This document shows, one piece after another, positions 2,271 through 43,612 of a stretch of 64,000 bases of DNA. Under the pieces are notes generated by a model. It was not told the origin of the DNA and ran no database searches. It saw only the letters and a program-made list of their open reading frames with translations. How positions within the stretch are numbered: position 1 is the stretch's first letter; the number at the start of each line of letters is the position of its first letter. Both the position numbers and the translations under genes were made by a program. The DNA lies in the IMG/VR virus record IMGVR_UViG_3300042934_000547, positions 167,976 through 231,975 of that record; one strand, written 5' to 3'.

Positions 2271-2410
2271 ACTTAACTCCTTTCTTTATATCATAATTAT
2301 TGTGCCCTGAGTTATATTTTATTTTATTGCTTTATCTGTATGTTAAAACTTACCCATGTATGCATATCTAAAGAAAAAAAATAAAGAGGGAAGTTATTCC
2401 CCCTTTTTAT

Positions 2411-3232
2411 TTAATGATTATGGTTACATCCACACGATTGTTCACCAGTATGAACATGACCGCAATTACAGTCACGAGGTTCTCTAGTCTGAATTTGTGG
2501 ATTTCTTATAATCGGACTACCTCCAATAATGTAATTAATATATGTGGTTGTAAATAACAAAGTTGGATGATCATTACCACCCACAGTCAAAGTCATTTTT
2601 GTCATAAGATCATTTTCATCAAATTCATATTGGATATGTTTAGCCCCTGTAACAGATTCTTCCAGCACTTGACCTAAATCATTATCACGATATATCATGT
2701 GCGAAAGTTCATTACCATCTTCACCGATAACTATTTCACTCTTTTTGTTTGGTGAATTTGGATAAAACTCGCCTGTTACCTTAAACCCATCAATTTCAAA
2801 TGAATATTTATCACCATCGATTTTAATATCATATAACGTTTCAATCAAAGCTTCTTTATTTTCTGAATCTTGAGAATCTACCGAATGTTTAATCATTCTT
2901 ATTGGTCTTTCTAATTCATTGAATTCAGTATCCATATAATTTAAATAAAGACTACCACTTCTAGTTGTTTCAGTAAATTTGCTTTTTGTAAGTTTGTTAT
3001 TTTCGTCATAAAAATTTTCTGTTATAGAACTCGGTTCAATTTTTCTAATTATTTTATCAGTATCTTGTAAATAACTAATTGTTTTTTGATTACCTACATA
3101 AATAGACGTTTCATCATTAATACGAACAATTCTTCCGAGTTCATCAGTAAACATCAATGCGTGAAAGCATTCTCCTTCGTTTACAACCTTTCTTGTCACT
3201 AATATCTTTTTATTTGCTAAATTTTCATTCAT
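2411..3232 (-). CDS. YD/RHS-repeat-like protein (paralog 1) with Cys/His-rich tail
   Basis: YDENNKL, DNDLGQV, YEFDENDLM repeats; N-terminus similar to 3366..4055; likely start at MNENL (3232). Confidence 0.65.
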   Translation of the reverse strand: MNENLANKKILVTRKVVNEGECFHALMFTDELGRIVRINDETSIYVGNQKTISYLQDTDKIIRKIEPSSITENFYDENNKLTKSKFTETTRSGSLYLNYMDTEFNELERPIRMIKHSVDSQDSENKEALIETLYDIKIDGDKYSFEIDGFKVTGEFYPNSPNKKSEIVIGEDGNELSHMIYRDNDLGQVLEESVTGAKHIQYEFDENDLMTKMTLTVGGNDHPTLLFTTTYINYIIGGSPIIRNPQIQTREPRDCNCGHVHTGEQSCGCNHNH

Positions 3233-3365
3233 TTTATTACCCTTTCTTTGCCTCATTTTAGGATAAGATATGAGGTCTTACACATTATTTTCTTATCCAT
3301 ATCTATAATATACATTTGAAATAAGTTATATTTACATGGGGAGTGAATATTCACTCCCATTATTT

Positions 3366-4055
3366 TTAATTAAAAATTCGGTTATAAAATGTAGTGGTGG
3401 TTTCTTCTGTATTATTATCTTTATGAGACACTTTCTTAGTTAATAATCCATTTTCGTCATATGTATATTTAGTTAACTTTCCATATTGACATGTTGAGTA
3501 CCATTGATTTAATGGATTATCAATGTAAAAATTATGTATAACAACAGTATCTGTTTTTATTACCGTTGCTTTATATTCTTTCTTACGTGAAGAATTTGGG
3601 AAATAAGTAAAGTCCAATTTTCTGCCATTTATGATAAAAGTGTATGTATCATTAACTATAGTAGCATCCATGATTGTTTTTTCCTTTTTGGGATCTATAT
3701 CACCAAAAATAGAATCAGTACTACCCTTAGTGATCTGTATTATTCTCCCTAACTCATCATATGAAAATATCCATATAAAAAGGTTTACACCATCTACGTC
3801 TTTTGTATACTCCCTACCTACTTCCAATTTACCGTTTTCATCATAGACATATTCGCCACACATTGTAGAACTTATTTTAATGATTTTGTCAGTATCATTG
3901 AAGTATTCGATATTTTCTGACGATCTCGTATACTTCTTTTCCCTCCTTACAATTCTACCGAGTCTATCGGTAAACATCAGTGAATGAAATTGTTCCTCAC
4001 CATTATTCTTTCTCTTTGTTACCAAAATTACTTTCTTTTCCAAATTTTTGTTCAT
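3366..4055 (-). CDS. YD/RHS-repeat-like protein (paralog 2)
   Basis: YVYDENGKL, FSYDELGRI, YTYDENGLL repeats. Confidence 0.72.
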   Translation of the reverse strand: MNKNLEKKVILVTKRKNNGEEQFHSLMFTDRLGRIVRREKKYTRSSENIEYFNDTDKIIKISSTMCGEYVYDENGKLEVGREYTKDVDGVNLFIWIFSYDELGRIIQITKGSTDSIFGDIDPKKEKTIMDATIVNDTYTFIINGRKLDFTYFPNSSRKKEYKATVIKTDTVVIHNFYIDNPLNQWYSTCQYGKLTKYTYDENGLLTKKVSHKDNNTEETTTTFYNRIFN

Positions 4056-4182
4056 CTTGTTTATTCTCCTTTTTAGGTTTTTAAATAAAAATCTATGTTT
4101 TTATTCATATCTATAATATATACTTGAAAAAATAACTAGAGAAAAAAGAAGGAGGATGAAATTAATCATCCTCCATTATTAT

Positions 4183-4710
4183 TTACTTTCCAGTTGAGCC
4201 AAAGCCCTTCTCACCACGAGATGATGGGGATAATTGTTTTTTAATTACCAGCTTATCAGGTTTAATTCCAGTAGATATAACTAGTTGAGCGATTCTATCA
4301 CCGATAGAAACTATATATTCACTTTCACCTAAATTGAATAATACTACCTGAATTTCTCCTCGATAAGATTCATCTATTGTTCCCGGACTATTAAGAACAA
4401 ATAAATCATGCTTACGAGCTAGTCCACTTCTACTACGAACATCGGCGTATAATTCTTCCCAAGGGTTTAATCTGATATTAATAGACGATAAATCAATCCA
4501 AGTTCCAGTTGGTATGATTCGTTTTGATTTAGGTGGAATAGTAACATTTATAGTGCTTTGTAAATCCATTCCTATAGAACCTTCATCTTCGAATTTAGGT
4601 AAGAATTTTTCATCTGTAACCTTTACATCCATTGTGATTTTTGGTATATTTGGTAGTGCTGACAGTGTACCAGTAAAACACATTTCTGAATTAACTATTA
4701 AATTATCCAT
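4183..4710 (-). CDS. dut: Trimeric dUTPase
   Basis: GMDL, RSRSGLA, NSPGTIDESYRGEI, GDRIAQL, RGEKGFGSTG (motifs 1-5). Confidence 0.97.
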   Translation of the reverse strand: MDNLIVNSEMCFTGTLSALPNIPKITMDVKVTDEKFLPKFEDEGSIGMDLQSTINVTIPPKSKRIIPTGTWIDLSSINIRLNPWEELYADVRSRSGLARKHDLFVLNSPGTIDESYRGEIQVVLFNLGESEYIVSIGDRIAQLVISTGIKPDKLVIKKQLSPSSRGEKGFGSTGK

Positions 4711-4767
4711 TATAAACTCCTATTTATTATATTTGATTTTATCTTATAGTTGATCATAAAGATTTTT

Positions 4768-5226
4768 TTAAATTTGTGGGAATAGTACGATATCTCTATA
4801 TTGGGTCAAAATCAAAAATTCCCTTATAGCCCTCACATGTCCTAGTTCCTCAATCCCATCTGTAATTAAAGTAAAATCCTTTTGTAATGTCTCTAACCTA
4901 CTTATTATTAGATCATAATCATCTGCTGTTGAGCTACGAGTATTATAAATGAATGCATCTAATATACCGAACAATTCCGTTCGTTTATTATCACAATCTT
5001 CATTTATGAGAGGTAGACTTTGTTCTGGTGTGAGGTTTAATGAAACTTTAATTAATTCTACCTCTTGTTTAATTGCTAAGTCGCATGAAGCTAATTCAGT
5101 CTCTATTGATAGCTTAAGATCAGGTGATAAAGTTGTATCACTATAATTACTAAGTATTTCTTTTAATTCATCATTCTTTTTAATCAATGATCTTAAATTA
5201 TTAAAACTAATTTTTTCATATATCAT
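4768..5226 (-). CDS. Hypothetical protein
   Basis: 152-aa ORF, GGAGGT RBS, GACA-N6-TA variant upstream. Confidence 0.6.
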   Translation of the reverse strand: MIYEKISFNNLRSLIKKNDELKEILSNYSDTTLSPDLKLSIETELASCDLAIKQEVELIKVSLNLTPEQSLPLINEDCDNKRTELFGILDAFIYNTRSSTADDYDLIISRLETLQKDFTLITDGIEELGHVRAIREFLILTQYRDIVLFPQI

Positions 5227-5299
5227 AATATATTACCTCCAATATTGGTTAATTAGAATAGTGTCATAAAAAAGAAAGAGAGGGAATCCCCTCCTTTCA

Positions 5300-6031
5300 T
5301 TAAAAATATTGATACGAATCAATATAATCAGTGGTAGATAATGAAACTAATCTTTGAACCCCATCTTCAAATTTATCACTATATATTGGAGTGAAGAGTT
5401 TAATCTTACCAAAATTATCAATGTAAGATAATAGTGAACCGAATTTGTCATAGATATATGTATCTACAGCATCTTCTTTATTTGGTTCAGATACGATTAA
5501 ATATTTCTTTGTTCTACCTGTTGATAGAGTCTCATATCTGTATAATTGAGTAATATTAGTTTTTAAATCTCTTTCTTTCGTAATTCTTCTGTTCTCGTCA
5601 TAATCATAATCTATTGAAACAAATCCTCTCTGATTTATTAATAGATCACCATCATCATATGTATATTTAGAGATCATTCTACCTAAGTCATCGCACTCCT
5701 CTATTAATAAACAAGGATCATTATTGTCATATTTATAGAAGATTTCGTGTATCTTATTTTTTATACTATTTGTTGAATGTATAAGCCTTTGTAGTTCATC
5801 ATAATAACTTTCTTTAATAACGTTTAAATTATTTTTAAAGTTAACTGCTGTGACAGATTTTGTATTATTATCAGAAAAAACTGTCATTTGTTCCCACTCT
5901 GGTTTAGCTGTAGGGTTCTTAAAACTCTGCATCCTAATTACCTCATTTTCTCCATTGTAGAATACCTTATCTACTGAATTATTTGAATACTTTCTTGTTA
6001 CGATTTTTGTAACTTGGTTTTTGTTAATCAT
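5300..6031 (-). CDS. YD/RHS-repeat-like protein (paralog 3)
   Basis: YYDELQRL, YTYDDGDL, YDYDENRRI, YIYDKFGSL. Confidence 0.7.
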   Translation of the reverse strand: MINKNQVTKIVTRKYSNNSVDKVFYNGENEVIRMQSFKNPTAKPEWEQMTVFSDNNTKSVTAVNFKNNLNVIKESYYDELQRLIHSTNSIKNKIHEIFYKYDNNDPCLLIEECDDLGRMISKYTYDDGDLLINQRGFVSIDYDYDENRRITKERDLKTNITQLYRYETLSTGRTKKYLIVSEPNKEDAVDTYIYDKFGSLLSYIDNFGKIKLFTPIYSDKFEDGVQRLVSLSTTDYIDSYQYF

Positions 6032-6087
6032 TTTGTTTGTCTCCCTTTATATTTTATTTTTAATAGAATATGATTCTATTATTACTT

Positions 6088-6921
6088 CTAAACGTATAAT
6101 ATCTGTTTTATGTAATTGCTGGATTTAATCTCAATTAATTGATTGTTTCTGGTATAATATAATTTATATGAGTCCTTAAATACCGTTTTATCGTCTTCGA
6201 TTATTTCTGTAAATATTCTATCACCTTTATCATTAAATTCAGTAAAAGTAATATCAGTTATGCGTTTATTTTGTTCATTCTTATATTGCATAAATTCTTT
6301 ATTTGTAGCTTCCTTACCATTTTCATGATATGTGTATTCAGTAACATGAATTTTATCTGCATCATTATCATATGTATGAGTTATAGATTTAATCTGGTTC
6401 TCATCATTGTAATAATAATCAGTAACAATACCATTTTTGTGATTTATGTATCGTGTCAAATCATTTCTGATATTATAATAGTATGATGATAATATTCTAC
6501 CATTCTCATCACATATCTCACTTATCATATCACTGTTTTCAAAATACTTCATTATCACAATATTATCATCTGAAACTAATTCTGATAATAATCCACTTCC
6601 ATTATATTTATATAATGTGATTTTAGGTACACCAGTTTTGATATCAAAATCAAATGTACTAATTATCTTACCAGACAAATCATATTCTGACTTAGATAAT
6701 ACAACTCCATTAGTATTATACTTAGTTTCAATAATTCTAGTATTACTATGAGTAAAAACTGTTCTAAGTTCTTTAATAAGTTTACCCTTAGTATTAACCT
6801 CTTTCTCATATAGAGATTGACCTGAGTCATTAAACATCTCAAGTCCAATTTTAGAAATCTTACCTTCTCCATCATTAAATTTAGTTGTAACTATCTTAGT
6901 TACCTTATTTGAATTCATCAT
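6088..6921 (-). CDS. YD/RHS-repeat-like protein (paralog 4)
   Basis: EYDLSGKI, YKYNGSGLL, YYYNDENQI, YTYHENGK; N-terminus similar to 5300..6031. Confidence 0.72.
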   Translation of the reverse strand: MMNSNKVTKIVTTKFNDGEGKISKIGLEMFNDSGQSLYEKEVNTKGKLIKELRTVFTHSNTRIIETKYNTNGVVLSKSEYDLSGKIISTFDFDIKTGVPKITLYKYNGSGLLSELVSDDNIVIMKYFENSDMISEICDENGRILSSYYYNIRNDLTRYINHKNGIVTDYYYNDENQIKSITHTYDNDADKIHVTEYTYHENGKEATNKEFMQYKNEQNKRITDITFTEFNDKGDRIFTEIIEDDKTVFKDSYKLYYTRNNQLIEIKSSNYIKQILYV

Positions 6922-7039
6922 TCGAATTCCCCCTGTTATTAAGATTATTAATTCTATCCTATATTAGATTAGAATCAATTTCATAAATATAATATATACT
7001 TATAAGTGTTTTTATGGAATTGAAATGATTAAGTGATTT

Positions 7040-7442
7040 AATTGGGTAGAAGAATTTTTTACCCTTCTCTTCTCCTTTCCCCCCTTAAACCCCCCTTTCC
7101 TCATCTCATCCCATTCACCCCTCTCCCTTATAATCTAGATTTAAATTATATTTATTTATTCTTTATTATTCTACCATCAATTCCATTATTCTTTATTTAT
7201 CTTTAATTTTATTTATTTTTCTTCTTTCTCTTTATTTCTTTTCTTTATTCTTCCTGAGCTTCATCCATGAACCCCAATCTCGCTTCGCTCGTTCATTGGG
7301 TTCATGTCTCTACGAGACATTTTAGAGTCCAAAGCCCCCTATAGAAAACACCCGGTAGTAAAAAACTACCGAATGCGGGGGCTTGGACATAGTTACAACG
7401 CTCGACAATATTAGTATCAACTTTTGTGATTATCCTATTGTT
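7040..7442. other. Non-coding pyrimidine-skewed tract plus hairpin cluster (candidate replication origin or ncRNA)
   Basis: C/T-rich + strand 7060-7255; inverted repeats 7266-7278/7295-7306, 7304-7310/7314-7320, 7327-7339/7377-7388, 7353-7359/7365-7371. Confidence 0.5.
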
Positions 7443-7516
7443 ATTCGTAAATATTTTTTATAAATTTTATAGTCCTTCAACAATACTATAAATAATCCTT
7501 AGGAGGATATAAATAA

Positions 7517-8131
7517 ATGAATATAAAAAATAAGATTAGGTTATTCTTTCATAAATATAATTTAGATAATATATTTCTATTCTTTAATAATGATATAGAT
7601 TTAGAAACTAAAACGACCATTCTGAGTGAGGAAGAAATATTAAGCAATCCTTTAGCTAGTTTATGTCAGCACCCATTTTATTCTATTATAGATATAAGCT
7701 TTGTTAATCAAAAAATAGTAATCAGTCTAGAGTCAATTATAACTCTAACCATATTACATGATTGTATTCAGAATATTTATAATAGAACGTCTGACTATAT
7801 ATTCACATTTGACATCACACGGTCTTATAAGATAGATAAGCTCGTAATCGATGTGGAAATACAATTCAGTACGACTCAGCAGGCTTATAAGTATTTACTC
7901 CTTTTACTGACTGACCTTAACCTAGAACTTATAGAAAGTGTAACTGTAGAACCTAAAAATATTTACGAGCATGATGATCTACTAAAATATTTCAATTCAT
8001 ATCAAGTAAATTATGAATCATATATACGATATTTGGATTCTAGTAAAACTAAACCTCAAATCAAATATATTATTGATGTACTTCATAATCATAATGATAT
8101 GATTAAAAATATTCGTGATTTAATACATTAG
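7517..8131 (+). CDS. Hypothetical protein
   Basis: 204-aa ORF, AGGAGG RBS, AACA-N6-TA at 7479-7490. Confidence 0.65.
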   Translation: MNIKNKIRLFFHKYNLDNIFLFFNNDIDLETKTTILSEEEILSNPLASLCQHPFYSIIDISFVNQKIVISLESIITLTILHDCIQNIYNRTSDYIFTFDITRSYKIDKLVIDVEIQFSTTQQAYKYLLLLLTDLNLELIESVTVEPKNIYEHDDLLKYFNSYQVNYESYIRYLDSSKTKPQIKYIIDVLHNHNDMIKNIRDLIH

Positions 8132-8143
8132 AAAAAAAAATAA

Positions 8144-8169
8144 ACCTCTAGGACTTTAATCCTAGAGGT
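8144..8169. terminator. Bidirectional intrinsic terminator
   Basis: acctctagga-ctttaa-tcctagaggt between convergent genes, flanked by A/T tracts. Confidence 0.8.
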
Positions 8170-8180
8170 ATCTTTATTTT

Positions 8181-9200
8181 CTATAAATCCGTATATATTT
8201 CTTCTAATAGATTTCCATCCATATCATAAATTTTTCTATGCTTTTGATACTTATCAAATCTTACAGCTTCCTTATTCCATTTAGAATAAATAAACTCTTT
8301 AAAATGACATTCTATATCATTATAAATGAAATCTCTTTCCATCATCAACTTAGAGAAGTTTCCATCATGGAAATATATACTTCCACCATCAGGCATGATG
8401 ATATTTTTGTATTCATAGTCGTCGATTTTTTCTGTTACCATTACTACATCATGTGGTAACGATTCTATAGTAACGGTGTGCCCCTGATTAGCAGCTACTA
8501 TTGTGTAAGAACTAGGACGTCTTTGAAGTACCTCAAAATTATCAGTTGGTTTTAATAATATCTTATCCCTAATTTTACTATAATTGATCTTACCATAAAC
8601 TGATGAAACTAAATCTCTGAATGAAGAGTAATTACCATCTGTTAAAATAGATGTACCGTTCTCAGTGATATTAGCTAATAAGCCACTCTTGCTATAGAAA
8701 TATTTAAACTCTTTCTTAGCTGGTATTATGACTATCATTCGTTCCACATCGTGACGATATGATGTGTATGAATATATCATATGAGATACAGTACGTTGGT
8801 CGTTTAAACCTAAAACGCTTTTAACTAACAACAATTTGGTATCCATATTATTATAAATGCTTATTGTTGCCTTACCAGTAACTTCATCATATATTATAAC
8901 AGTATTACCATATTGCACTCCCTTTATTTCACGTTTAGTAACTTCGCCAGTAACAAGATTTGTCGTCCTATGTATTTGGTGTGGTAAATCTTCACGCAGA
9001 CTCATGTATTCAACATTTAATTCAGTTGATGCTACAAAGTCAGTCTTTGTCTTTATTCCACCATAGTTATTATAAATCTCTTCCTTTAGAAGTTTACCCT
9101 GAGACTCTTCGGTCCCCTGTTCATAAAGATATGTATGTCGTAACTTTGATTGTCCATCTACTAATGCATATACTTTCCTTAATTCATTTTTTCCTTCCAT
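8181..9200 (-). CDS. Divergent YD-repeat-like beta-rich protein (paralog 5, weak)
   Basis: YNNYGGI, FYSKSGLL, IYDMDGNLL; likely start MEGKN at 9200 after AAGGAGG. Confidence 0.5.
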   Translation of the reverse strand: MEGKNELRKVYALVDGQSKLRHTYLYEQGTEESQGKLLKEEIYNNYGGIKTKTDFVASTELNVEYMSLREDLPHQIHRTTNLVTGEVTKREIKGVQYGNTVIIYDEVTGKATISIYNNMDTKLLLVKSVLGLNDQRTVSHMIYSYTSYRHDVERMIVIIPAKKEFKYFYSKSGLLANITENGTSILTDGNYSSFRDLVSSVYGKINYSKIRDKILLKPTDNFEVLQRRPSSYTIVAANQGHTVTIESLPHDVVMVTEKIDDYEYKNIIMPDGGSIYFHDGNFSKLMMERDFIYNDIECHFKEFIYSKWNKEAVRFDKYQKHRKIYDMDGNLLEEIYTDL

Positions 9201-9361
9201 TTGTATCCTCCTTATATAACCTTTTAACTTATCGTTTATATAATATATACCCATATCAAATTTTGAAAATAAAAGGGAGGAGTGAAATTAATCACTCCCA
9301 ACAAGATGATTTTTATTACTTTACTTATAACCGAGACTTATGATATAGTTATATATATTTA

Positions 9362-9535
9362 GAAAAAAAAATATCGGGTAGGAAATCAATCCTACCCATT
9401 AGGCATGTGTAAAAGTAATTGATTTATATGAATTAAAAAAGGAACGTTGTTGATGGAAAACAAATTTTAGGAGTTATACATAACAAATTGTCTTCACATG
9501 CCTATTTTATTTAACTGAAATTTTCTTATTCAATT
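9362..9535 (-). ncRNA. Candidate ~170-nt small RNA
   Basis: AACA-N6-TA at 9535-9546(-); closing stem 9400-9409/9495-9504; terminator hairpin 9376-9397 plus T-tract; no ORF. Confidence 0.5.
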
Positions 9536-9555
9536 ACCTTATTGTTATTACCCTA

Positions 9556-9669
9556 TTAATTATTATTACGTTGAATTGGTATAATATTATGAGTAAATTT
9601 GAATAGTAATTGTTCAGACTCTTCCACCATCAATGCCTCTAGTATGAATTTCTTTTCATTAATTGTCAT
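9556..9669 (-). CDS. 37-aa hypothetical protein (not in ORF track)
   Basis: MTINEKKFILEALMVEESEQLLFKFTHNIIPIQRNNN*, directly after the ATP-cone gene, AAGGA RBS. Confidence 0.45.
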   Translation of the reverse strand: MTINEKKFILEALMVEESEQLLFKFTHNIIPIQRNNN

Positions 9670-9672
9670 AGT

Positions 9673-10521
9673 TTATTTTTCCTTTATTATGTATTCTAAA
9701 TTATTCAGTTTAAGTTTATTAGCATAACTAAATAATTCAGTGGCAAATATATCATCACATTGTTTATGCCAATTTATTTTTTCTTCATCTGTCATTTCCA
9801 ACAGCGTACAAAATTCATCATATCTATCTATATATAGATATACCTTAGATTTATTATCCCATACATCCAATGTTTTATCTAATCTCACTTTACGAACAAT
9901 AAATCGTGCCAGTGTTTTTAATACATTGATATATAATTCTTTATTGAAACGTCCTGATTCTTCAAATAACTGAAATACATTTACAGTAAATTTATTGTAT
10001 CTAATTCTATCAAGACTAATATATCCACTGTATATATATTTAAATAAATCGTATCGCTCATTTATCTGTATTGGATAACTAAAATTATTCATATTAATAT
10101 TGTGAGTACATTTCGATACCCAATCATTAAATTTCTTTGAATTAATATTAGTATGTAATATCTCAGTTACCGTATAACTAGGTTGTATATTGATGAAATT
10201 ACTTAATGGTATTTCATCTACACAATTCACAGGAACATAGGAATTTGCTCGGTTATTATTATAACAGACGTAATACTTAAGAGCCATAGGTTCATATTTA
10301 ATGAGTAATCGTTCAATAGCCTCCTGTATCTCACAGCTTTGAACTATATCCCTAGAACCAAATTCTTTTTTGATTTTTCCAGAGATAGTATAAACTAATG
10401 AAACGTCCTCTAGATATTTTTTAGGATTGCAAGCCACCAAAACTGAATTTAAAATAATATTGAGTTTTTCTTTATTAAATGGTTCTACCGCCCCGTTCCG
10501 TTTAATAATTAAAGTAATCAT
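9673..10521 (-). CDS. ATP-cone domain protein with degenerate RNR-like C-terminus
   Basis: IIKRNGAVEPFNKEKL...EIQEAIERLL ATP-cone signature. Confidence 0.75.
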   Translation of the reverse strand: MITLIIKRNGAVEPFNKEKLNIILNSVLVACNPKKYLEDVSLVYTISGKIKKEFGSRDIVQSCEIQEAIERLLIKYEPMALKYYVCYNNNRANSYVPVNCVDEIPLSNFINIQPSYTVTEILHTNINSKKFNDWVSKCTHNINMNNFSYPIQINERYDLFKYIYSGYISLDRIRYNKFTVNVFQLFEESGRFNKELYINVLKTLARFIVRKVRLDKTLDVWDNKSKVYLYIDRYDEFCTLLEMTDEEKINWHKQCDDIFATELFSYANKLKLNNLEYIIKEK

Positions 10522-10676
10522 ATTGTAAGTCTCCCTTCTAATGCCTATTAATTAAATTATCTTTATGTTTGTTTTTTCGTTAAATATTCTACAGTTACAT
10601 AAATCAATATCTCCGTGAAATTTATTATTTTATACCATTGCAACATTATAATAGTTGTGGAAGACTAAAGGAGAAT

Positions 10677-11489
10677 ATGATGATGGAAAATAAAATAGAT
10701 GTACAAGGATATAAGTATTATTCAATAGAAGATAATATTATTAGAATCTCTAAAGATAAAAATGTTATTAATGATAAGTGGACTAAACTGAAAATGGATG
10801 CATTAATGGCTTTTCATATAATATCGAATGATGATGGAGCCAAATATATTATGGTTGCTATGTACAATAATGGTGACTATAAAAATCCTGTTCTGATATT
10901 TGTTTCAAATTTTATAAATGAATGGGACGCAAATATTGGTAATAGAATACTAGGGAAAACATTCAACAGGTATACTGGAATTGATGAAAATTTATTTAAG
11001 GTTATAAAAATAGAATATTCCGAATATGTTGCTATATATAAGGAAGATTCATTTAAAAATATTTATGACCAACTTATTAATAAAGATAAGTTTAATGAAG
11101 TCCTTAAAGCATTTAATTCTGCTTTTATAGAAATGGGTAATCTTAATATATCTCTACCTGATAATCTTTATGATTATATGAAACACGGTGCATTTGATTA
11201 TGACTACGATAATGAATTAGGCATTGAGCAACTTGAATTTGACCTTGAAATAGATAATGAGAGACTAATCAACCAATTAGACTTAGAAACATTTCTCGGT
11301 CATAAATTAATTCAACCTGTTATAGTCAAATATAATCGAATTATAGTTTTAGAAGATATCAAAAAAGACTATGGATTATTCCGTGACGCCACTGATACAT
11401 TATATCTAGTTACGTTTATTCGTGGAGATATAATAGATGATGAAAACCTAGATTTAATCGAGTGGAATAAGAGCTTTGGAGTGAGGTAA
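10677..11489 (+). CDS. Hypothetical protein
   Basis: AAGGAG RBS before MMMENK; AACA-N6-TA at 10642-10653. Confidence 0.6.
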   Translation: MMMENKIDVQGYKYYSIEDNIIRISKDKNVINDKWTKLKMDALMAFHIISNDDGAKYIMVAMYNNGDYKNPVLIFVSNFINEWDANIGNRILGKTFNRYTGIDENLFKVIKIEYSEYVAIYKEDSFKNIYDQLINKDKFNEVLKAFNSAFIEMGNLNISLPDNLYDYMKHGAFDYDYDNELGIEQLEFDLEIDNERLINQLDLETFLGHKLIQPVIVKYNRIIVLEDIKKDYGLFRDATDTLYLVTFIRGDIIDDENLDLIEWNKSFGVR

Positions 11490-11560
11490 TAAAATATATT
11501 ATAAATATATATTATAACAATGAATTAAACAAATTTAAAATTTTAGGAGGAACAACAAAG

Positions 11561-12280
11561 ATGGATATGGATAATACATTCATGAACCCAAACCAAGTGA
11601 ATCAAAAGGAAATAAAGGATTACGAAGCAGAATTCGATACTCCAATTACATTAAGTGAGCCGATGAGATTTTATATCGAGACCACTACACGTTTAGGTAT
11701 GGAGATATTAAAGAAGTATACTCCAATTTTCGGCGACTTAATCGGTACGTTTATTACGGTTAATACCAAAGGCGATCTTGAAGTATCATTACAGTTTGAG
11801 AAAAAAGGTGCTGGCAATGTTGTAGACTTATTCAACAACAGTGACTTCAACCAAAGAATTACAGCGTTCAATACGCTTAACACAACAAACAGAATCTTCG
11901 ATTTAGATGATACTGTTAAAGGAACTTTCCAAAGATTCTTAATCAAAGCTAATCCAATGCAGAAAATTGATTGGAATCAATATATCAGACAAATAACAAT
12001 CAACAACAACACTATGAGTGGAAAGCACACAATTCTTGAATTGGCTCACATTTCACTTGATAGATTGCTGCCTGAATTAATATTTGTTGGAGAAGATGCT
12101 AAGAAAAAACGCACTACTCAGATTAAGACTATTATAACTGGTTCTGTAAATCCAGCTTCACCATTATCAAAAAATTGGTTCGTGAAGATAGATATGCTGG
12201 ATCAAGCTACTGTTGATTTCGTATCTAAAGAAGCAGGAATTGTTACAAGCACTTACGGCTTGGATATGATAACACTCTAA
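11561..12280 (+). CDS. Hypothetical protein, probably abundant and early
   Basis: AGGAGG RBS, tandem TATATTATA motifs at 11494-11516, own terminator 12289-12311. Confidence 0.65.
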   Translation: MDMDNTFMNPNQVNQKEIKDYEAEFDTPITLSEPMRFYIETTTRLGMEILKKYTPIFGDLIGTFITVNTKGDLEVSLQFEKKGAGNVVDLFNNSDFNQRITAFNTLNTTNRIFDLDDTVKGTFQRFLIKANPMQKIDWNQYIRQITINNNTMSGKHTILELAHISLDRLLPELIFVGEDAKKKRTTQIKTIITGSVNPASPLSKNWFVKIDMLDQATVDFVSKEAGIVTSTYGLDMITL

Positions 12281-13418: not shown

Positions 13419-14468
13419 ATGAATAATTATCAAGTAGAAGTAAGCCAATTATTGGGAAAATTCTATGTTGCGTATAGCAAATTAGAAACTATTGTAAATG
13501 CTTTATTTGCTGCATCCACAGAAAATATTTCCCATATTAATATCTATCTAGATATTAATTCTATGACTAAGGTGCTATATGGAAATATTGACTTTAGAAT
13601 GGATGAAAGACTTCTTATATCTGCAAGTATCGTAAACTTATGTGCTCATTATAGGTCTTTCTTTAGACGCTACTATAATACAGAGACTACATTTTATATT
13701 ATAGATTCTCATAATTTACCCTTAATTAATCGACGTATAATAAAGGATTACAATATCTCTTATGCAAAGAATATTGATACTAAAAGAGATTTATTGAATA
13801 AAGTTAAGGTGAATATAGAATGTACAAAGATGCTATGCGAATATTTACCAGAAATATATGTTATCCCTACGACGTTTGAAACTGGTGTTATAGTACGTGA
13901 ATTGATGGGGAGAGAACAGAATAAACCTACGGCACACATGGTTATTACTAAGGACCCATATAATTATCAATTGATAACTGATGTAAAGAATTCATTTATA
14001 TTGAGACCAGTTGATAAGGAGAAAACTTATTTTGTTGAATCTTCAAATTTGTTTAAAGTAATTGAAATTGAACGAGGATTAAAAAGGGGACTCGAACCTC
14101 TTATTTCCTCACAACTATACTCTATATTATTATCACTTATTGGTATCAAAGAACGCAACATTAAAAGTATCTTCAGTATACACACGGCAATGAAGATGAT
14201 CCAAGAGGGTATAGAGAGTAATTGTTTGGTTAATGGATATAATCATAATCCAAATTTATTCTTTAGTAGAATAAATGGGGTAAATCCAGAGGAACTAAAA
14301 AATAGATTTGAAGTGATAGATTTAATTTATCAACATAAAATATTTGTGACTCATCCAGAATTTCAATTATTAGACACCTTTATAATAGACAAACATAATC
14401 CACAGGAAGTGAGGGAAATATGTAGTAAATATTATCTTTTAGATCCTATAGATTTAGAGAGACTGTAA
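13419..14468 (+). CDS. FEN/PIN-fold 5'-3' exonuclease-like protein (divergent)
   Basis: IYLDINS, FYIIDS, VITKDPYNYQL resemble PIN/FEN strands; several catalytic acids appear lost. Confidence 0.45.
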   Translation: MNNYQVEVSQLLGKFYVAYSKLETIVNALFAASTENISHINIYLDINSMTKVLYGNIDFRMDERLLISASIVNLCAHYRSFFRRYYNTETTFYIIDSHNLPLINRRIIKDYNISYAKNIDTKRDLLNKVKVNIECTKMLCEYLPEIYVIPTTFETGVIVRELMGREQNKPTAHMVITKDPYNYQLITDVKNSFILRPVDKEKTYFVESSNLFKVIEIERGLKRGLEPLISSQLYSILLSLIGIKERNIKSIFSIHTAMKMIQEGIESNCLVNGYNHNPNLFFSRINGVNPEELKNRFEVIDLIYQHKIFVTHPEFQLLDTFIIDKHNPQEVREICSKYYLLDPIDLERL

Positions 14469-14480
14469 AGGAGTTAGAAT

Positions 14481-15641
14481 ATGAGATATAGATATAAAGT
14501 AGGATTATCATGGACAGATCCAGTTGGAGTTGTAACAGAGTTTGATCCAGCTCTTGTGAAAAGTTTTATGATATATTCGGATTATGAGGGTAGTTTTTTA
14601 CCAATGATTGTTCTTAATATGAAGATTCGGGTTGATATATATGATAAAATAATACTTAATAAGGATAAAGGATTCTTTCTATTCACACTGAAGAAATACA
14701 AAGATTCTGATCCAAATTATGTAATGGAGGAGTCATATGTCGGTGTACAGTGTTCCTATTATACACTGGATGATATTAATTATCGTGAAAAGATAGTCGA
14801 AAACGCATCTGATAAAGAGGATTACCATAGGGTTGTAAATATCGGTTTAATCAGGGAGGATTTATTAACACAAAATAGATGCTCTGCTAATACTGTAATA
14901 AATACAAGTCTCATGGGAATAATATCATCACAAACTAAAGTTAAACGATTATTAACTGAATATATTGGAAAGAGTTATTCCGGTATTATTCCTCCTATTA
15001 GTAAGGTTTCAGAATTATTAAATTTCTTGGAGGATCAAATAGGACCATTCTATCCAACACCATATAGGTTTTTTATTGATAATGATAGAACGTATTTAAT
15101 ATCATCTAGTGGGCAACCTATATATGCTAAGGGAGACAAACAGTTCGCAGTCTCTATAGAAATATTAGATCCTACAGATGATAGAGTGCGTAATGATGGT
15201 GCAACCATGGACATATCAGGAAATATTTGTAACGTTCTTGTTAGTGCCGAAAGAACTAGATTTCAAATTGATAGTATTGAAGGTTCAAAAACTAATAAAT
15301 ACACCCATATAGGTTATGATACGAGTGTTGGTAACGTCGATGTCAATTTAATGACAAGAAAAGAATTAATTGGGCTTAACAAGTTTAGTTATAGTCCAGC
15401 TAAATTCCTGAATCACGATAAATTTACAGCTGAATTAAATAATAAGTCCCTAACAATCATGTTGGATGAATGTGACAATTCTATATTCACAATTAATCGT
15501 AAATTCATTATTAAAAATATTGAAAAATATAAACAGTATGACGGTGAATATTTATTGGTTAAGAAGATAGAAGGATTTATACAAGAAGGGGAAGTTTACA
15601 AAAGTATTGCGACAGTAGTTTTTAAAAAAATACCGAGGTAG
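14481..15641 (+). CDS. Putative tail/baseplate hub-like structural protein
   Basis: Beta-rich; SFMIYSDYEGSFLPMIVL N-terminus and YDGEYLLVKK C-terminus reminiscent of gp27-like hubs. Confidence 0.35.
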   Translation: MRYRYKVGLSWTDPVGVVTEFDPALVKSFMIYSDYEGSFLPMIVLNMKIRVDIYDKIILNKDKGFFLFTLKKYKDSDPNYVMEESYVGVQCSYYTLDDINYREKIVENASDKEDYHRVVNIGLIREDLLTQNRCSANTVINTSLMGIISSQTKVKRLLTEYIGKSYSGIIPPISKVSELLNFLEDQIGPFYPTPYRFFIDNDRTYLISSSGQPIYAKGDKQFAVSIEILDPTDDRVRNDGATMDISGNICNVLVSAERTRFQIDSIEGSKTNKYTHIGYDTSVGNVDVNLMTRKELIGLNKFSYSPAKFLNHDKFTAELNNKSLTIMLDECDNSIFTINRKFIIKNIEKYKQYDGEYLLVKKIEGFIQEGEVYKSIATVVFKKIPR

Positions 15642-32313: not shown

Positions 32314-35300
32314 TTATTGTGTTAGTGGTAACATTGCAGCGATTAATGCCGTTAAACTATTGTCTCCTGTTCCACCCTTACCACCCTTTTCATTGATGAT
32401 ATTGAGTAATGCATTTGGGTTTATAGAGTTTCCAGAAGAAGACTTCTTAGTAAGTTCTTTAATATCGTTCTCAGTGATATTTATATTTAATTTTTTGGTA
32501 ATTAAATTCAATATGTCTTGGAGAAGCTCATTCGTTCTACCAATATTAGATACTGACATTACAATCCTTGTAAGAAGTTCAATTAAGTTGGCATCAATTG
32601 TACCAGCGTTGATTGTTGTGTTAATATTTTGACCACCGAAATTACTTTTCATTATATTCTCACGGTCACGCATTGACAATTCGGCAACTGATGACATATC
32701 AGCATCCATAAACTCAAAACTATTAGGATTATCCATAGCATCTAATTTACGGCTCTCATCAGCAAGTTCAAATGCACTCTTAATAACAGGAGATGTTTTA
32801 CCGAACCCACCAAATCTACCAGATTTCTTAGCGTTACCAAATCCACCTATCTGAGCGTTAGGATCAAAGTTCTTAACCCTAGATGCCATTATATCCGATA
32901 TAGTACCAGACCATTTTGGATCAGATGCGTAGTATTTATTCACACCACCCAAACTTCCATCGATATAATATTTTCCACCCGGTGTTAAATAGTTATTCTT
33001 TAACAATCTTGCTGTCTCATCGAAATTTTGAGCCGGGCTATCGAATGTTCTGGCTGATTTATATGGACTGCTATCATAAGCTGCATAACCAGAGAAATTA
33101 TTTTTATTTTTGGCTAAGGCACTTGTACCCCATCCACTTTCAAGAGCGACTAATGAAGATAAGAATAATGGATTTACACCAAATTTATTGGCTGCATTAG
33201 CTAAATCATTGGCATGTTTCTTCAATGGTTTATTTGCATAGGCACCAGTAAAGAATTTGTTTTGTAAATCTGCCCCACTTAATGAACCAAATCCACCACC
33301 ACGTCTTCTAACAAATCCCATACCAGCAGGCATTTGAGCTAGATTAGATGTATTGACAGCAGTTGAATTGATATTAGTGTAACCACCTATAGCATTAGCG
33401 AATGAAGCTGCTAAACCAGTAGGCATTTGAGTTCCACCATTCTCACGTGTCCAGTTAGCGATTTTTGATAAGATATTCTCATGGGTTTCGAATCCGTATT
33501 TAGTTCCAACAACTCCCATAATAGCATCACCGAATAAACCAATACCAGACGCCATTTTACCCATCCAATCAAATAATCCACTTTCTTTATTACCACCTTC
33601 AGCAATAGTTGGAACATTTGCGAACCCTGCACGATCGGTTAAACGTAAGTTCTTACCATTAATGTCAGTATAAGCCCACATGCTCTTAGTTGTTCCATTT
33701 TTGAATAATGCATCCTTTGAAAACTCTGTACTTTCTCCTTCACCCATAGGGTCATTTACCCATACACTATTATCACTAGCCATACCAGTTACAACTGAAT
33801 AATGACCACCCGGAGTATATGGAGTAGTACTAATATTTCCTTGACCATTTATAACAACTGGTCTACCCGCTTCAATATTTGCTTTTAATGAATCCCAAGT
33901 ATTACTAATATTCTGTCCCTTTACGTTGTAATCACTTAATTGTGGATTACTACTGCTAGAGAACATGTCATGAGCAGTTCCTGCATTATCAATCCAATAA
34001 CGTAATCCCATATCTGTTAAATCTAGCGGTGATATAGGTTTATTGTTAAATGCAGATGTAATCATTGACATTGCTGTTGGTCCACATGCAGCATCACCAT
34101 ATGTGTAATTTTGAGCATAATACAAATCTTTCCATTGAGGATCATTTTGGGACCAATATGGGAAACCATTAAGCAATCTTAATTGGTTATTAAATGATAC
34201 GTTTTCACCAACCGTAGTTGCTTTTCCATCTAGGTATTCTTCATAACCTCTCCACCTGTTGTATATTGCATCTACTCCCGTTTGTTGTTCTAATGCCTTC
34301 CTTAATTCTTCATTATGAGCATTAGTTTTTTGATAATAATCTGGTGCTAAAGATTGTTGATATTCAGTATATTTCTTCCAATAATCAGTATTCTGAGATA
34401 TTGGAGTACCCTTTGGCGTCGTTGATATCCGTCTAGAATTTGATGTCCTATTCGCTGGTTTACCTTTATTATTACCGAATCCTCCACCAGTTAAATATTG
34501 TTTCGAATTTGATGAAGTTCTCGGATTTATGAATTTAAACTTACTATTACCGAATCCTCCACCAGTTAAATATTGTTTCGATGAATTTGATTTACCACCC
34601 ATCCCAACTACTGTTGAATCACCATCTTCGATTATATAACTATCAGCGAGTTCTCTCTTGGTTTGAGATTTAGGCACTGATGGAACTTTATCTAGATACT
34701 TATTCTGTAATTGAGCCATTGTTCTGCTATCTTCAGTTATATCTAATTCGCCATTCCATGCATCATATAACCATACCGCAAGTTTTTGAAGGAAGTTATA
34801 TCCTAAGAATGATGTTGTTACTAAGTTGACAATTTCGAGAATCCATACAGCAGGAGCTTGTAATAAAAATTGCATCACTCCTGATATTGCTTGCATTTTT
34901 GCATCAACATCTTCTTTTGGTACTCCAAACCATTTAGCTGCACCTGTCTTTGATGCACCCCATGCTCCAAATCCAACCATGAATACTAGATTCACAATTC
35001 CACCGGTAGCAATACCAGCAACATCTCTACCAGATTTCTCAGCTATTTTAGCTGCAATTTTGGTATTACTGAAGTATTTATGACAGCTAGAAAATGTATT
35101 TTTGATAAATGCACTAAGTCCTTTTTGACCAAAGTTAGGCATGAATTTTTTAACCACTTTGAGGATACTTTCGATAACTGGATCTAATAATCCAACAAAC
35201 CAAGTAACTAGTTTACCTCTAGAACCTTCAACAGCAGTTCTTATACCTTTCTTGCTTATATTTTTAGCTGTGACTTCTGCACCCTCTTCTAATACTTCTT

Positions 35301-43509: not shown

Positions 43510-43612
43510 AACTCGATTTCTCCTTTCTATATTACTGTATTGCCTTATGAGTATGTTGAAAAGAAACAAAAAGTGGGAGTACAACTTAATGTACTCCCAA
43601 TTGATCTAATTA

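Follow-up and report, generated by a model that had tools for sequence, protein, structure and literature searches.

Putative early YD/RHS-repeat proteins encoded in a variable block of a phiKZ/AR9-related jumbo phage

Large viruses carry expansions of ankyrin, MORN, and FNIP repeat proteins, among them the host-range ankyrin proteins of poxviruses. These are multi-copy, fast-evolving, non-enzymatic scaffolds encoded in variable regions, and in these respects the phage proteins described here may be comparable. The analogy is functional, as the fold is another one and the phage proteins have no adaptor such as an F-box.

The repeat type of the phage proteins is that of the cocoons formed by Rhs proteins, Tc-B-C, and teneurins (Tse15, PDB 8UXT; Tse5, 8CP6; teneurin-2, 6CMX). 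However, the phage proteins (188-340 aa) have at most one quarter of the length that closes such a shell, and they are devoid of the N-terminal plug, the PAAR/VgrG link, the DPxG core, and the toxin. Their genes are located behind early-type promoters and outside of a secretion system context. The premise that YD repeats are essentially confined to toxins of >1000 aa is outdated and wrong. Bacteria commonly encode short stand-alone RHS-repeat proteins: the ESM Atlas contains many clusters of such proteins of 230-350 aa, and secreted ones are found in Treponema MAGs. Bacterial short RHS-repeat proteins of this size (230-350 aa; Bacteroidota, Bacillota, Fusobacteriota) match the phage proteins in size class and in predicted fold (TM 0.6-0.76 for the ESM models of proteins B and D, see below). 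PDB entry 4QXZ (166 aa, uncharacterised) and a set of Treponema lipoproteins also belong to the short stand-alone class, and the Treponema-type proteins have a 21-residue repeat which is identical in kind to that of phage protein F (see below). Most of the F-type homologues examined in Treponema MAGs start with a signal or lipoprotein leader, which hints at a different native role of the fold; the phage copies have no such leader.

For transcription, the closest described system is that of the early promoters and early ORFan genes of phiKZ-related phages, above all Bacillus phage AR9. The AR9 early consensus AAATATATATTAT-N6-G(+1) is the promoter of the virion RNA polymerase, and experiments have established that it acts early and without the need for protein synthesis (PMC5312081).

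Gene order, promoters, and terminators

The window is a stretch of 64,000 nucleotides from the genome of a soil jumbo phage (231,975 bp, with direct terminal repeats). The genome codes for split RNA polymerase beta/beta' subunits, tubulin, a divergent PolB, and DNA ligase, and the phage is a phiKZ/AR9-related jumbo phage with split multisubunit RNA polymerases. Its major capsid protein has no BLAST match among 50,697 records of isolated phages, and the lineage is thus a distant one. The genome is AT-rich, and Tyr, Asn, and Asp are abundant.

Five ORFs had been predicted as a family of short YD/RHS-repeat proteins. All five are present in the ORF list at the predicted positions, on the minus strand. 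They are listed here together with their control signals:

2411..3232, minus strand: gene A, 273 aa, degenerate YD repeats, Cys/His-rich C-terminal tail, paralogue of B
3366..4055, minus strand: gene B, 229 aa, with the strongest support as a YD-repeat protein among the five
5300..6031, minus strand: gene C, 243 aa, paralogue of D, without a promoter motif of its own
6088..6921, minus strand: gene D, 277 aa, about 11-12 degenerate YD hairpins
8181..9203, minus strand: gene E, 340 aa, beta-rich ORFan
3298..3316, minus strand: early-type promoter of A, AATGTATATTAT-N6-G, predicted +1 G at 3298, one mismatch to the AR9 consensus
4106..4124, minus strand: early-type promoter of B, AGTATATATTAT-N6-G
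6982..7000, minus strand: early-type promoter of D, AGTATATATTAT-N6-G, conserved in variant L038
9233..9251, minus strand: early-type promoter of E, GGTATATATTAT-N6-G
2383..2406, minus strand: terminator-like hairpin with T-run after A
3339..3358, unstranded: palindromic G+C hairpin after B, without a T-run on the minus strand
5275..5296, minus strand: terminator-like hairpin with T-run after C
8144..8169, unstranded: terminator-like hairpin after E, bidirectional, also located after the plus-strand ORF 7517-8131

For gene A, a 281-aa form starting at 3256 is less likely than the 273-aa form; an RBS-like AAAGGG precedes the second ATG, which aligns with the start of B. A 357-aa ORF form of E would begin with an ATG at 9254, upstream of the predicted transcription start at 9233. 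Next to these genes are those for RNase H, dUTPase, and an ATP-cone protein, together with ORFans, and the structural genes start about 10 kb further along the window.

A sixth member, gene F, is located outside the window (genome positions 13954-14520). It codes for a protein of 188 aa with seven 21-residue repeats. It had been missed in the initial reading and has the same promoter motif upstream.

The motif TATATTATA occurs 20 times in the window (7.3 expected). Four of the five genes (A, B, D, and E) have it directly upstream, as originally described, and so has the RNase H gene. It is absent before C. Because C lacks a motif of its own and follows 57 nt behind D, the two genes probably form one transcription unit with D first. 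A conserved, AT-rich sequence of the AR9 early promoter type was found upstream of A (with one mismatch), B, D, E, and F. The genome-wide consensus, AA(A/G)TATATATTATA-N4-TGAA, was derived from 45 TATATATTAT sites (with the G in 35 of the 45) and matches the AR9 early consensus; split multisubunit RNA polymerases are a further feature in common. Exact TATATATTATA sites are intergenic in 34 of 41 cases, even though 93% of the genome is coding, and 28 of the 41 precede a start on the same strand by no more than 150 nt. The same promoter class is found before the polymerase, ligase, RNA polymerase, and tubulin genes. The timing is known in AR9, whereas for the present phage it is read from the promoter sequence. 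Since the upstream motif matches the AR9 early promoter, early expression of the YD genes is supported by analogy.

Terminator-like sites are enriched in the region (20 vs. 2.9 expected). Most of the genes were said to have a terminator of their own, and a hairpin with T-run indeed follows A, C, and E; the hairpin after B has no T-run. The organisation of the YD genes as independent cassettes with promoter and terminator is thus supported.

Repeat identity and relationships among the proteins

The curated cut-offs are 22 bits for Pfam RHS_repeat (PF05593) and 15.8 bits for NCBIfam TIGR01643. Protein B exceeds both (30.3 and 21.1 bits, respectively). C and D exceed the cut-off of TIGR01643 (20.4 and 18.5 bits) and stay below that of RHS_repeat (18.4 and 18.7 bits). 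For all three proteins, RHS/YD is the top match in both curated libraries; C has in addition a weak match to DUF3836. D contains seven strict YD motifs (0.33 expected). Protein A reaches 14 bits for RHS_repeat by itself and is counted as a YD protein because it is 39% identical to B; with an HMM of the F-type repeat, it outscores 500 of 500 shuffles. F is a canonical member (RHS_repeat 40.1 bits, TIGR01643 39.4 bits) and matches the Tse15 Rhs core (E 1.6e-13) as well as NCBIfam RHS_core over about 140 residues.

The prediction of five YD/RHS-repeat ORFs is thus supported for four of them: B, C, and D directly, by curated cut-off, and A via B. It is unproven for E, which has a marginal excess of YD motifs (2 vs. 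0.24 expected, P ~0.025). Protein E has no match in Pfam, NCBIfam (RHS/YD at E<=1), PHROGs, or the PDB (E<=10), and the F-type repeat HMM scores it no better than shuffles. ESM features (0.84, low 'recognition') give a lead only, which is within the chance range.

No sequence homologue of A-E was detected in any search made, and B is an ORFan in protein sets of 5.8 and 1.84 billion. Tandem arrays of short YD-repeat proteins do not correspond to any PHROG family, and no literature was found on them.

The YD hairpin fold of B and D is predicted from ESM models. The ESM Atlas model of B (pTM 0.64) has short RHS-repeat proteins as its nearest clusters (TM 0.5-0.69). The model of D (pTM 0.66, pLDDT 0.79; ESMFold2 pLDDT 77-78) has TM values of 0.56-0.76 to short RHS-repeat proteins. 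The AF2 model of C is of low confidence (pLDDT 46, not usable), the rows matched being mostly RHS (TM 0.34-0.45), and that of E is likewise not usable (pLDDT 34).

Two paralogue pairs had been recognised, and both are clear from sequence comparison: A/B (39% identity, E 2e-31) and C/D (26% identity, E 3e-8). The wider claim of one family of five found no support in the sequence comparisons. Comparison of A/B, C/D, and E by hhalign gave probabilities <3% throughout, jackhmmer started from each protein recovers itself or its pair partner and nothing else, and phmmer scores against the YD set are equalled or beaten by 22-45 of 200 shuffles for A and by 27-28 of 200 for E. As judged by sequence, A/B, C/D, and F are not tied to one another, and they could therefore stem from several independent acquisitions.

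The features of exported toxins are missing, as had been noted. Neither a signal peptide nor a membrane helix is present by hydropathy (maximum over 19 residues <=1.09), and the N-termini of A-F (first ~36 residues; maximum over 12 residues <=0.85) show no signal or lipoprotein leader. DPxG is absent from the translations, and neither a toxin nor an RHS-associated core domain was found with Pfam and NCBIfam. TEN_YD-shell (PF25023) has no match in the whole genome, and NF041261 (RHS_core) is matched by F alone, at positions 561-697 of 1261 and far below the cut-off. Delivery genes (PAAR, VgrG, T6SS, TcA partner) are absent among the neighbours.

Variation between strains and related phages

In a strain with ~93% identity, the dUTPase gene and C, D, and E have been retained. 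A and B, in contrast, have been replaced: their interiors cannot be aligned at 80%, and a contig joins position 3066 to 3929. In a wastewater variant (L038), D is intact, with 92% protein identity and a dN/dS of 0.185. This value comes from a single sequence pair, within which omega is 0.04 for codons 1-115, 0.55 for codons 116-205 (also <1), and 0.04 for codons 206-277. D is thus under purifying selection, its changes being confined to a variable patch in the middle of the protein, with both ends strongly conserved. The replacement of A and B and the variable patch of D bear out the description of the set as diversified. E is a genuine gene under purifying selection: in the related strain, 28 of the 37 listed substitutions are at third codon positions, with 25 synonymous vs. 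10 non-synonymous codons.

A distant relative (G001; UViG_3300012274_000057) has 93 ORFs in common with the phage. Window positions 2411-10521 have no counterpart there. Instead, G001 has five short YD genes of its own, three of which are interleaved with homologues of window genes 10638-12280. The YD region of the window is thus a variable locus.

Many other uncultured large phages also carry such genes in tandem, with 2-8 or more short YD ORFs per array at 23 IMG/VR loci. One IMG/VR contig of 277 kb has about 20 short YD ORFs and no conserved partner gene. These arrays (e.g., G001 and UViG_3300048598_000287) resemble the set described here in being phage-encoded (90-390 aa), multi-copy, located in non-structural regions, and without a partner gene. 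G001 is truly related to the present phage, and its YD genes are found at the equivalent locus. They differ in having near-perfect 21-residue WKEYDDKGNLIH repeats like those of F, while A-E are far more degenerate, and jackhmmer does not link A-E to the near-perfect array copies. In isolated jumbo phages, YD-repeat genes were neither reported nor found.

Possible roles of the proteins

We consider the proteins to be early, cytoplasmic, non-enzymatic YD/RHS-repeat binding scaffolds, encoded in a variable block of a phiKZ/AR9-like jumbo phage (probability about 0.5). The block comprises the two paralogue pairs A/B and D/C (229-277 aa) and the beta-rich ORFan E, the kinship of which is uncertain. 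In each protein, the YD beta-hairpins would line up as a short open strip whose length is by far insufficient for a closed Rhs cocoon. The strip would most likely serve as an evolvable binding surface which is produced at the start of infection. Its partner may be a host macromolecule, with a phage macromolecule being less likely, and its purpose may be host take-over or counter-defence. Duplication, replacement, and local surface change would allow the set to keep pace with a changing target.

It is possible, though doubtful, that A/B and C/D are two unrelated pairs of degenerate beta-hairpin proteins which were separately acquired or invented, with E an unrelated beta-rich ORFan that is YD-like only by eye, in an AT-rich genome with abundant Tyr, Asn, and Asp. 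This would agree with the failure of hhalign, jackhmmer, and phmmer to connect the pairs, with shuffles matching A and E in the latter, and with the lack of a family match and the chance-level ESM result for E. However, two independent curated libraries each give RHS/YD as the top match of B, C, and D, above the TIGR01643 cut-off, and feature and structure comparisons lead B and D independently to the same clusters of short RHS-repeat proteins. In addition, four of the five genes have the promoter class and the neighbourhood in common, and the YD genes found at the equivalent locus of G001 are unmistakable. That the proteins are instead virion-associated or surface-binding (adhesins, decoration proteins, or ejected proteins) and grip carbohydrate or cell wall is unlikely. 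The leaders of most Treponema F-type homologues and the structural genes ~10 kb away in the window point in this direction, but the promoter class is of the AR9 early type and common to the polymerase, ligase, RNA polymerase, and tubulin genes, the neighbours code for RNase H, dUTPase, and the ATP-cone protein, and the phage copies have no export signals.

We regard it as very unlikely that the proteins join by their edges, with themselves or with each other, to build a closed YD shell around something, as a split Rhs cocoon. Cocoons made of closed YD sheets are indeed known from Rhs, Tc, and teneurin proteins (PDB relatives of F), and several paralogues are co-located, but a plug, an RHS-associated core or protease, and a cargo domain are all missing. 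Copy number and length vary freely among related phages, unlike in a stoichiometric assembly, and the genes have separate promoters and terminators. Shell oligomerisation, which had been proposed originally, found no support in the tests made, a single homodimer test giving 'no answer'. It is highly improbable that the genes are what is left of a large Rhs toxin gene in decay, or functionless selfish repeat DNA. The repeats of A-E are indeed very degenerate when compared to those of F and the G001 copies. Decay is nevertheless largely refuted for D and E by the intact D gene of the wastewater sample, with its low dN/dS and conserved ends, and by the strong third-position bias in E; in addition, the genes are equipped with promoters, ribosome-binding sites, and terminators.

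If the proteins are early binding scaffolds, a more general, rather speculative extrapolation is that cytoplasmic YD proteins are a widespread, unrecognised class of early, fast-diversifying, host-targeting binders in large phages. They would then be the phage counterpart of the ankyrin and MORN expansions of giant viruses. A-E would represent the fast-evolving end of a series, with the near-perfect repeats of F and G001 at its slow end. The curved YD sheet is otherwise known only to serve as a container for toxins; here, it would have been reused as an evolvable recognition surface, which may, for example, neutralise host defence or take-over targets.

ORFs A to E and the evidence for YD repeats

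The five ORFs that had been proposed as short YD/RHS-repeat proteins are all present on the minus strand between window positions 2411 and 9254. The proposed genome-wide count of paralogues added a textbook sixth member, F, which lies outside the window.

A: start at window position 3232, minus strand, 273 aa; paired with B
B: window, minus strand, 229 aa; paired with A
C: window, minus strand, 243 aa; paired with D
D: window, minus strand, 277 aa; first gene of the D-C unit
E: start at window position 9203, minus strand, 340 aa
F: genome 13954-14520, 188 aa

For A, the second ATG (3232) is the most likely start because a purine-rich ribosome-binding site precedes it and because it aligns to the first residue of B; for E, position 9203 was chosen because the promoter motif falls within the longer 357-aa frame. 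Both pairs described in the original prediction were recovered, A/B clearly (39% identity, E 2e-31) and C/D more weakly but as a real relationship (26% identity, E 3e-8). The motif TATATTATA, which has 20 sites in the window compared to 7.3 expected, immediately precedes four of the genes (A, B, D, and E), the number given in the original prediction. Gene C lacks the motif and follows D by 57 nt, so that D and C are probably a single transcription unit. There is a strong enrichment of terminator-like hairpins (20 vs. 2.9 expected); those following A, C, and E agree with the claim that most of the genes have their own terminators. The hairpin of B has no T-run on its own strand. No signal peptide, membrane helix, DPxG motif, or toxin/protease domain is found in A to E. 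A PADLOC search for defense systems returned only sub-threshold noise.

The C-terminus of A (window 2411-2470) is a Cys/His-rich tail (CNCGHVHTGEQSCGCNHNH) which is absent from B. Protein A has five cysteines, the other proteins have one or two, and the tail resembles an appendage for metal binding.

F is made up of seven exact 21-residue repeats, scores 40 bits against RHS_repeat, and matches the Rhs core of Tse15 (E 1.6e-13). For the window proteins, the evidence is graded. B is above both cut-offs (Pfam 30.3 bits, cut-off 22; TIGR01643 21.1 bits, cut-off 15.8). TIGR01643 is also passed by C (20.4) and D (18.5), for which the top Pfam match is RHS_repeat, slightly under its cut-off. D has seven strict YD motifs (0.33 expected), and D, B, and C come second, third, and fifth among 166 genome ORFs in YD motif density. 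A reaches only 14 bits on RHS_repeat and owes its YD label to its paralogue B; it outscores 500 of 500 shuffles when scored on a repeat model that was derived from the canonical repeats of phages. The scores of C, D, and E against an F-type repeat HMM did not exceed those of shuffled sequences. When phmmer scores against the YD set were compared with shuffles, B to D were marginal and A and E gave no signal. A genome scan for DUF2963 and TEN_YD-shell found neither, and one for DUF3836 gave a single weak match, in C.

The ESM Atlas has models for both B (pTM 0.64) and D (pTM 0.66, pLDDT 0.79), which group by language-model features and structure with clusters of RHS-repeat proteins that are stand-alone and short (230-350 aa; TM 0.5-0.76). 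AlphaFold2, run without a useful alignment, gave unusable models for E (pLDDT 34) and C (pLDDT 46); an ESM Atlas fold search with the unusable C model retrieved mostly RHS entries, at TM values of only 0.34-0.45, and the search with the E model was meaningless (TM < 0.3). E has no family or PDB match, its excess of YD motifs is marginal, and its language-model feature score (0.84) is inside the chance range.

Profile methods linked neither A/B to C/D, nor the pairs to E, nor any of A to E to the canonical repeats of phages. Nothing meaningful was retrieved from the PDB by sequence with the A/B profile, the C/D profile, or E. Searches with B, E, and the two pair profiles against 5.8 billion proteins (word index) and 1.84 billion proteins (exhaustive) retrieved only the queries themselves; two cadherin-repeat proteins, the sole extra matches, were spurious.

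We therefore accept four YD-repeat proteins, in two pairs. Of the five originally proposed, B, C, and D are thus supported by curated models and A via B, with F as an additional member elsewhere, but E is without such support and is treated as a neighboring ORFan of unassigned fold.

Genome setting and early-type promoters

The IMG/VR virus record (231,975 bp, direct terminal repeats, 30.8% G+C) originates from a soil metagenome, and the window covers bases 167,976-231,975. Among 50,697 isolated phage records, neither the region (megablast) nor the capsid protein (tblastn) had a match, and scans of IMG/VR with B, D, and the capsid protein as queries revealed no relatives. The genome codes for several split RNA polymerase beta/beta' pieces, a tubulin/FtsZ-family protein, a "divergent family B" DNA polymerase, and a NAD-type ligase, and the window adds a GroEL-like gene, virion proteins, and a 3,756-aa ORF. 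These genes identify the virus as a distant phiKZ/AR9-like jumbo phage, possibly a nucleus-forming one. Examples of the polymerase and tubulin/FtsZ-like genes, in our local sequence numbering, are L052:3139-5283, L053:5635-7830, L053:10322-11431, and L055:109-1608.

Genes A to E are surrounded by genes for nucleotide metabolism and replication (RNase H, dUTPase, an ATP-cone protein), and F adjoins the ribonucleotide reductase gene and has the same promoter motif as A, B, D, and E. The ATP-cone gene (window 9673-10521) is separate from the ribonucleotide reductase gene, about 68 kb off across the genome ends; its 282-aa product has the ATP-cone domain at the N-terminus (38 bits) and a C-terminal part without assignment. 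F is followed by two small ORFs, 102 and 111 aa long, which contain YD-like motifs and may be additional degenerate members (F and both ORFs: L001:4280-5521, genome 13279-14520). A 24-residue hhalign match of the first of them, L001:4628-4936, to the N-terminal motif of A/B (E 0.005, probability 7%) was not accepted.

Between the D promoter and a plus-strand ORF (7517-8131) there is an ORF-free gap of about 520 bp (6997-7516). Its G+C-rich core of about 170 nt (7255-7425) has three hairpins, is followed by a purine-rich tract, and folds far better than shuffled sequences (minus strand −62 kcal/mol, z −4.8; plus strand z −4.6). This stretch may be a non-coding RNA of the phage; Rfam and tRNA scans had no match in the core or in the region as a whole.

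Genome-wide, 45 TATATATTAT sites yielded the consensus AA(A/G)TATATATTATA-N4-TGAA (G in 35 of 45). Exact TATATATTATA sites are intergenic in 34 of 41 cases, in a genome that is 93% coding, and 28 of the 41 precede a gene start on the same strand by no more than 150 nt. The motif also precedes the genes for DNA polymerase, ligase, RNA polymerase subunits, and tubulin. The early promoters of Bacillus jumbo phage AR9 were mapped by dRNA-seq and primer extension as AAATATATATTAT-N6-G(+1); in AR9 they proved to be early and not to depend on protein synthesis, and hence are read by the injected virion polymerase (PMC5312081). The consensus in our phage is essentially that of AR9, so that the proposed early expression is supported by a specific analogy: the promoter class is of the AR9 early type, and, with the timing taken from AR9, the YD proteins are probably made at the very start of infection. 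Among the listed RNA runs, none is shown to contain this phage.

Variation among relatives

A distant but true relative (G001, UViG_3300012274_000057; 230 kb, 26.6% G+C) also bears a YD gene array and has 93 ORFs in common with our phage (21-58% identity) in long collinear blocks. The homologue of the 3,756-aa ORF (window 32314-43584, minus strand) has 3,193 aa in this relative, with 27% identity over 962 residues. Window positions 2411-10521 (A to E, the dUTPase gene, and others) have no counterpart there. The relative has its own set of five near-perfect WKEYDDKGNLIH-repeat proteins, and three of their five genes are interleaved with homologues of the window genes at 10638-11489 and 11561-12280. 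In both phages, the YD genes therefore fill a variable locus that is flanked by conserved blocks.

A close strain (~93% identical) is present in two other public runs, one from wastewater and one at depth >2000. It keeps the dUTPase gene along with C, D, and E. In A and B, the interior segments (2698-3095 and 3494-3900, respectively) are not alignable even at 80%, and one contig of this strain links position 3066 to 3929 with 30 unrelated bases between (region 2698-3929), suggesting a single A/B-type gene that was recombined or replaced. We thus regard the A/B pair as undergoing replacement or recombination.

Between D and its full-length wastewater allele (L038; 92% protein identity), the dN/dS of this single allele pair is 0.185, and the changes are concentrated in codons 116-205 (omega 0.55, compared to 0.04 in each of codons 1-115 and 206-277). 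D is a constrained gene with a localized variable patch. In E, the third codon position accounts for 28 of the 37 listed substitutions, with 25 synonymous versus 10 non-synonymous codon changes. Both D and E are thus functional and constrained, and these selection data refute, for both, the view that they are decaying toxin genes. Both related-strain runs have a 2-base insertion just inside the second codon of E (9199-9212), and one has a further 1-base insertion at 9212, so that E of the relatives probably has a different N-terminus or start codon.

Short YD proteins in other phages and their possible role

The original prediction started from the premise that YD repeats usually belong to giant toxins or teneurins, and that being short is therefore unusual. 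This is outdated: the ESM Atlas holds dozens of short RHS-repeat clusters, from Bacteroidota, Bacillota, and Fusobacteriota, and the solved structure 4QXZ (166 aa) is an uncharacterized relative. F-type proteins of 243-452 aa occur in Treponema, Flavobacterium, and Cloacimonadota MAGs, most with signal or lipoprotein leaders. A 350-aa protein from a Flavobacterium MAG (L044:4728-5780) has F-type YD repeats fused to a distinct Cys-containing N-terminal domain and is without a signal peptide, an architecture unlike that of the Treponema lipoproteins.

F has matches in only 7 of the 50,697 isolated phage records. In the uncultured 65-kb podovirus MW202615.1 from a freshwater spring, a 147-aa protein (L002:3947-4390) has about five to six F-like 21-residue YD repeats; it is only partly annotated, as a hypothetical protein, and is encoded amid RNA ligase, methyltransferase, and thymidylate synthase genes. 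A profile built from F and this homologue found 23 loci in IMG/VR, with YD ORFs of 76-390 aa (few exceptions), typically in tandem arrays of 2-8; one 277-kb contig carries about twenty. No conserved partner gene accompanies the arrays across the 23 viral loci, and no PHROG family corresponds to their proteins. The multisubunit polymerase marker is absent from four other large array-bearing contigs, and the trait is therefore not limited to one phage lineage. Our literature searches found no work on RHS repeats in jumbo phages and, for YD repeats in phages, Rhs-toxin and APSE papers only; none of the papers found describes phage genes of this kind. We conclude that this is a recurrent, undescribed expansion of YD genes in large uncultured phages; what is new is the setting, a phiKZ/AR9-like phage in which YD proteins stand alone, lack a signal, and are encoded behind early-type promoters.

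Proteins of the A to D type are small, soluble, non-enzymatic beta-hairpin repeat proteins which are quickly multiplied and exchanged and recur in many large phages. The original prediction of an early, cytoplasmic, diversified family is a reasonable reading. Its further suggestion, that the proteins oligomerize into a shell, has nothing in its favor: plug, core, and cargo parts are absent, copy number varies freely, and the single prediction of a D homodimer (score 0.00, without controls) speaks neither for nor against it. The promoter class, together with the absence of export signals, disfavors a role as virion protein or adhesin. Close to the variable binding surface also suggested originally, we infer that the YD proteins would be made early in infection and serve as binding scaffolds, the surface of which evolves along with its target. 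Most plausibly, this target would be a host factor, bound for take-over or counter-defense.

To our knowledge, work on YD/RHS repeats has dealt almost exclusively with their role as shells, in secreted toxins and in teneurins. Here, a phiKZ/AR9-like jumbo phage has small YD proteins without signal or toxin, and the same kind of gene is tandemly multiplied in many unrelated uncultured large phages. By-products of the analysis, usable whatever the function, are a model of the early promoters in an uncultured lineage of jumbo phages, a distant relative to compare with, and a close strain, for which the very deep run may point to a culturable system. If the YD proteins are evolvable binders of host factors, they would be a new source of phage-host interaction modules, possibly of counter-defense proteins, and a compact natural scaffold with which to study ligand recognition by a YD sheet.
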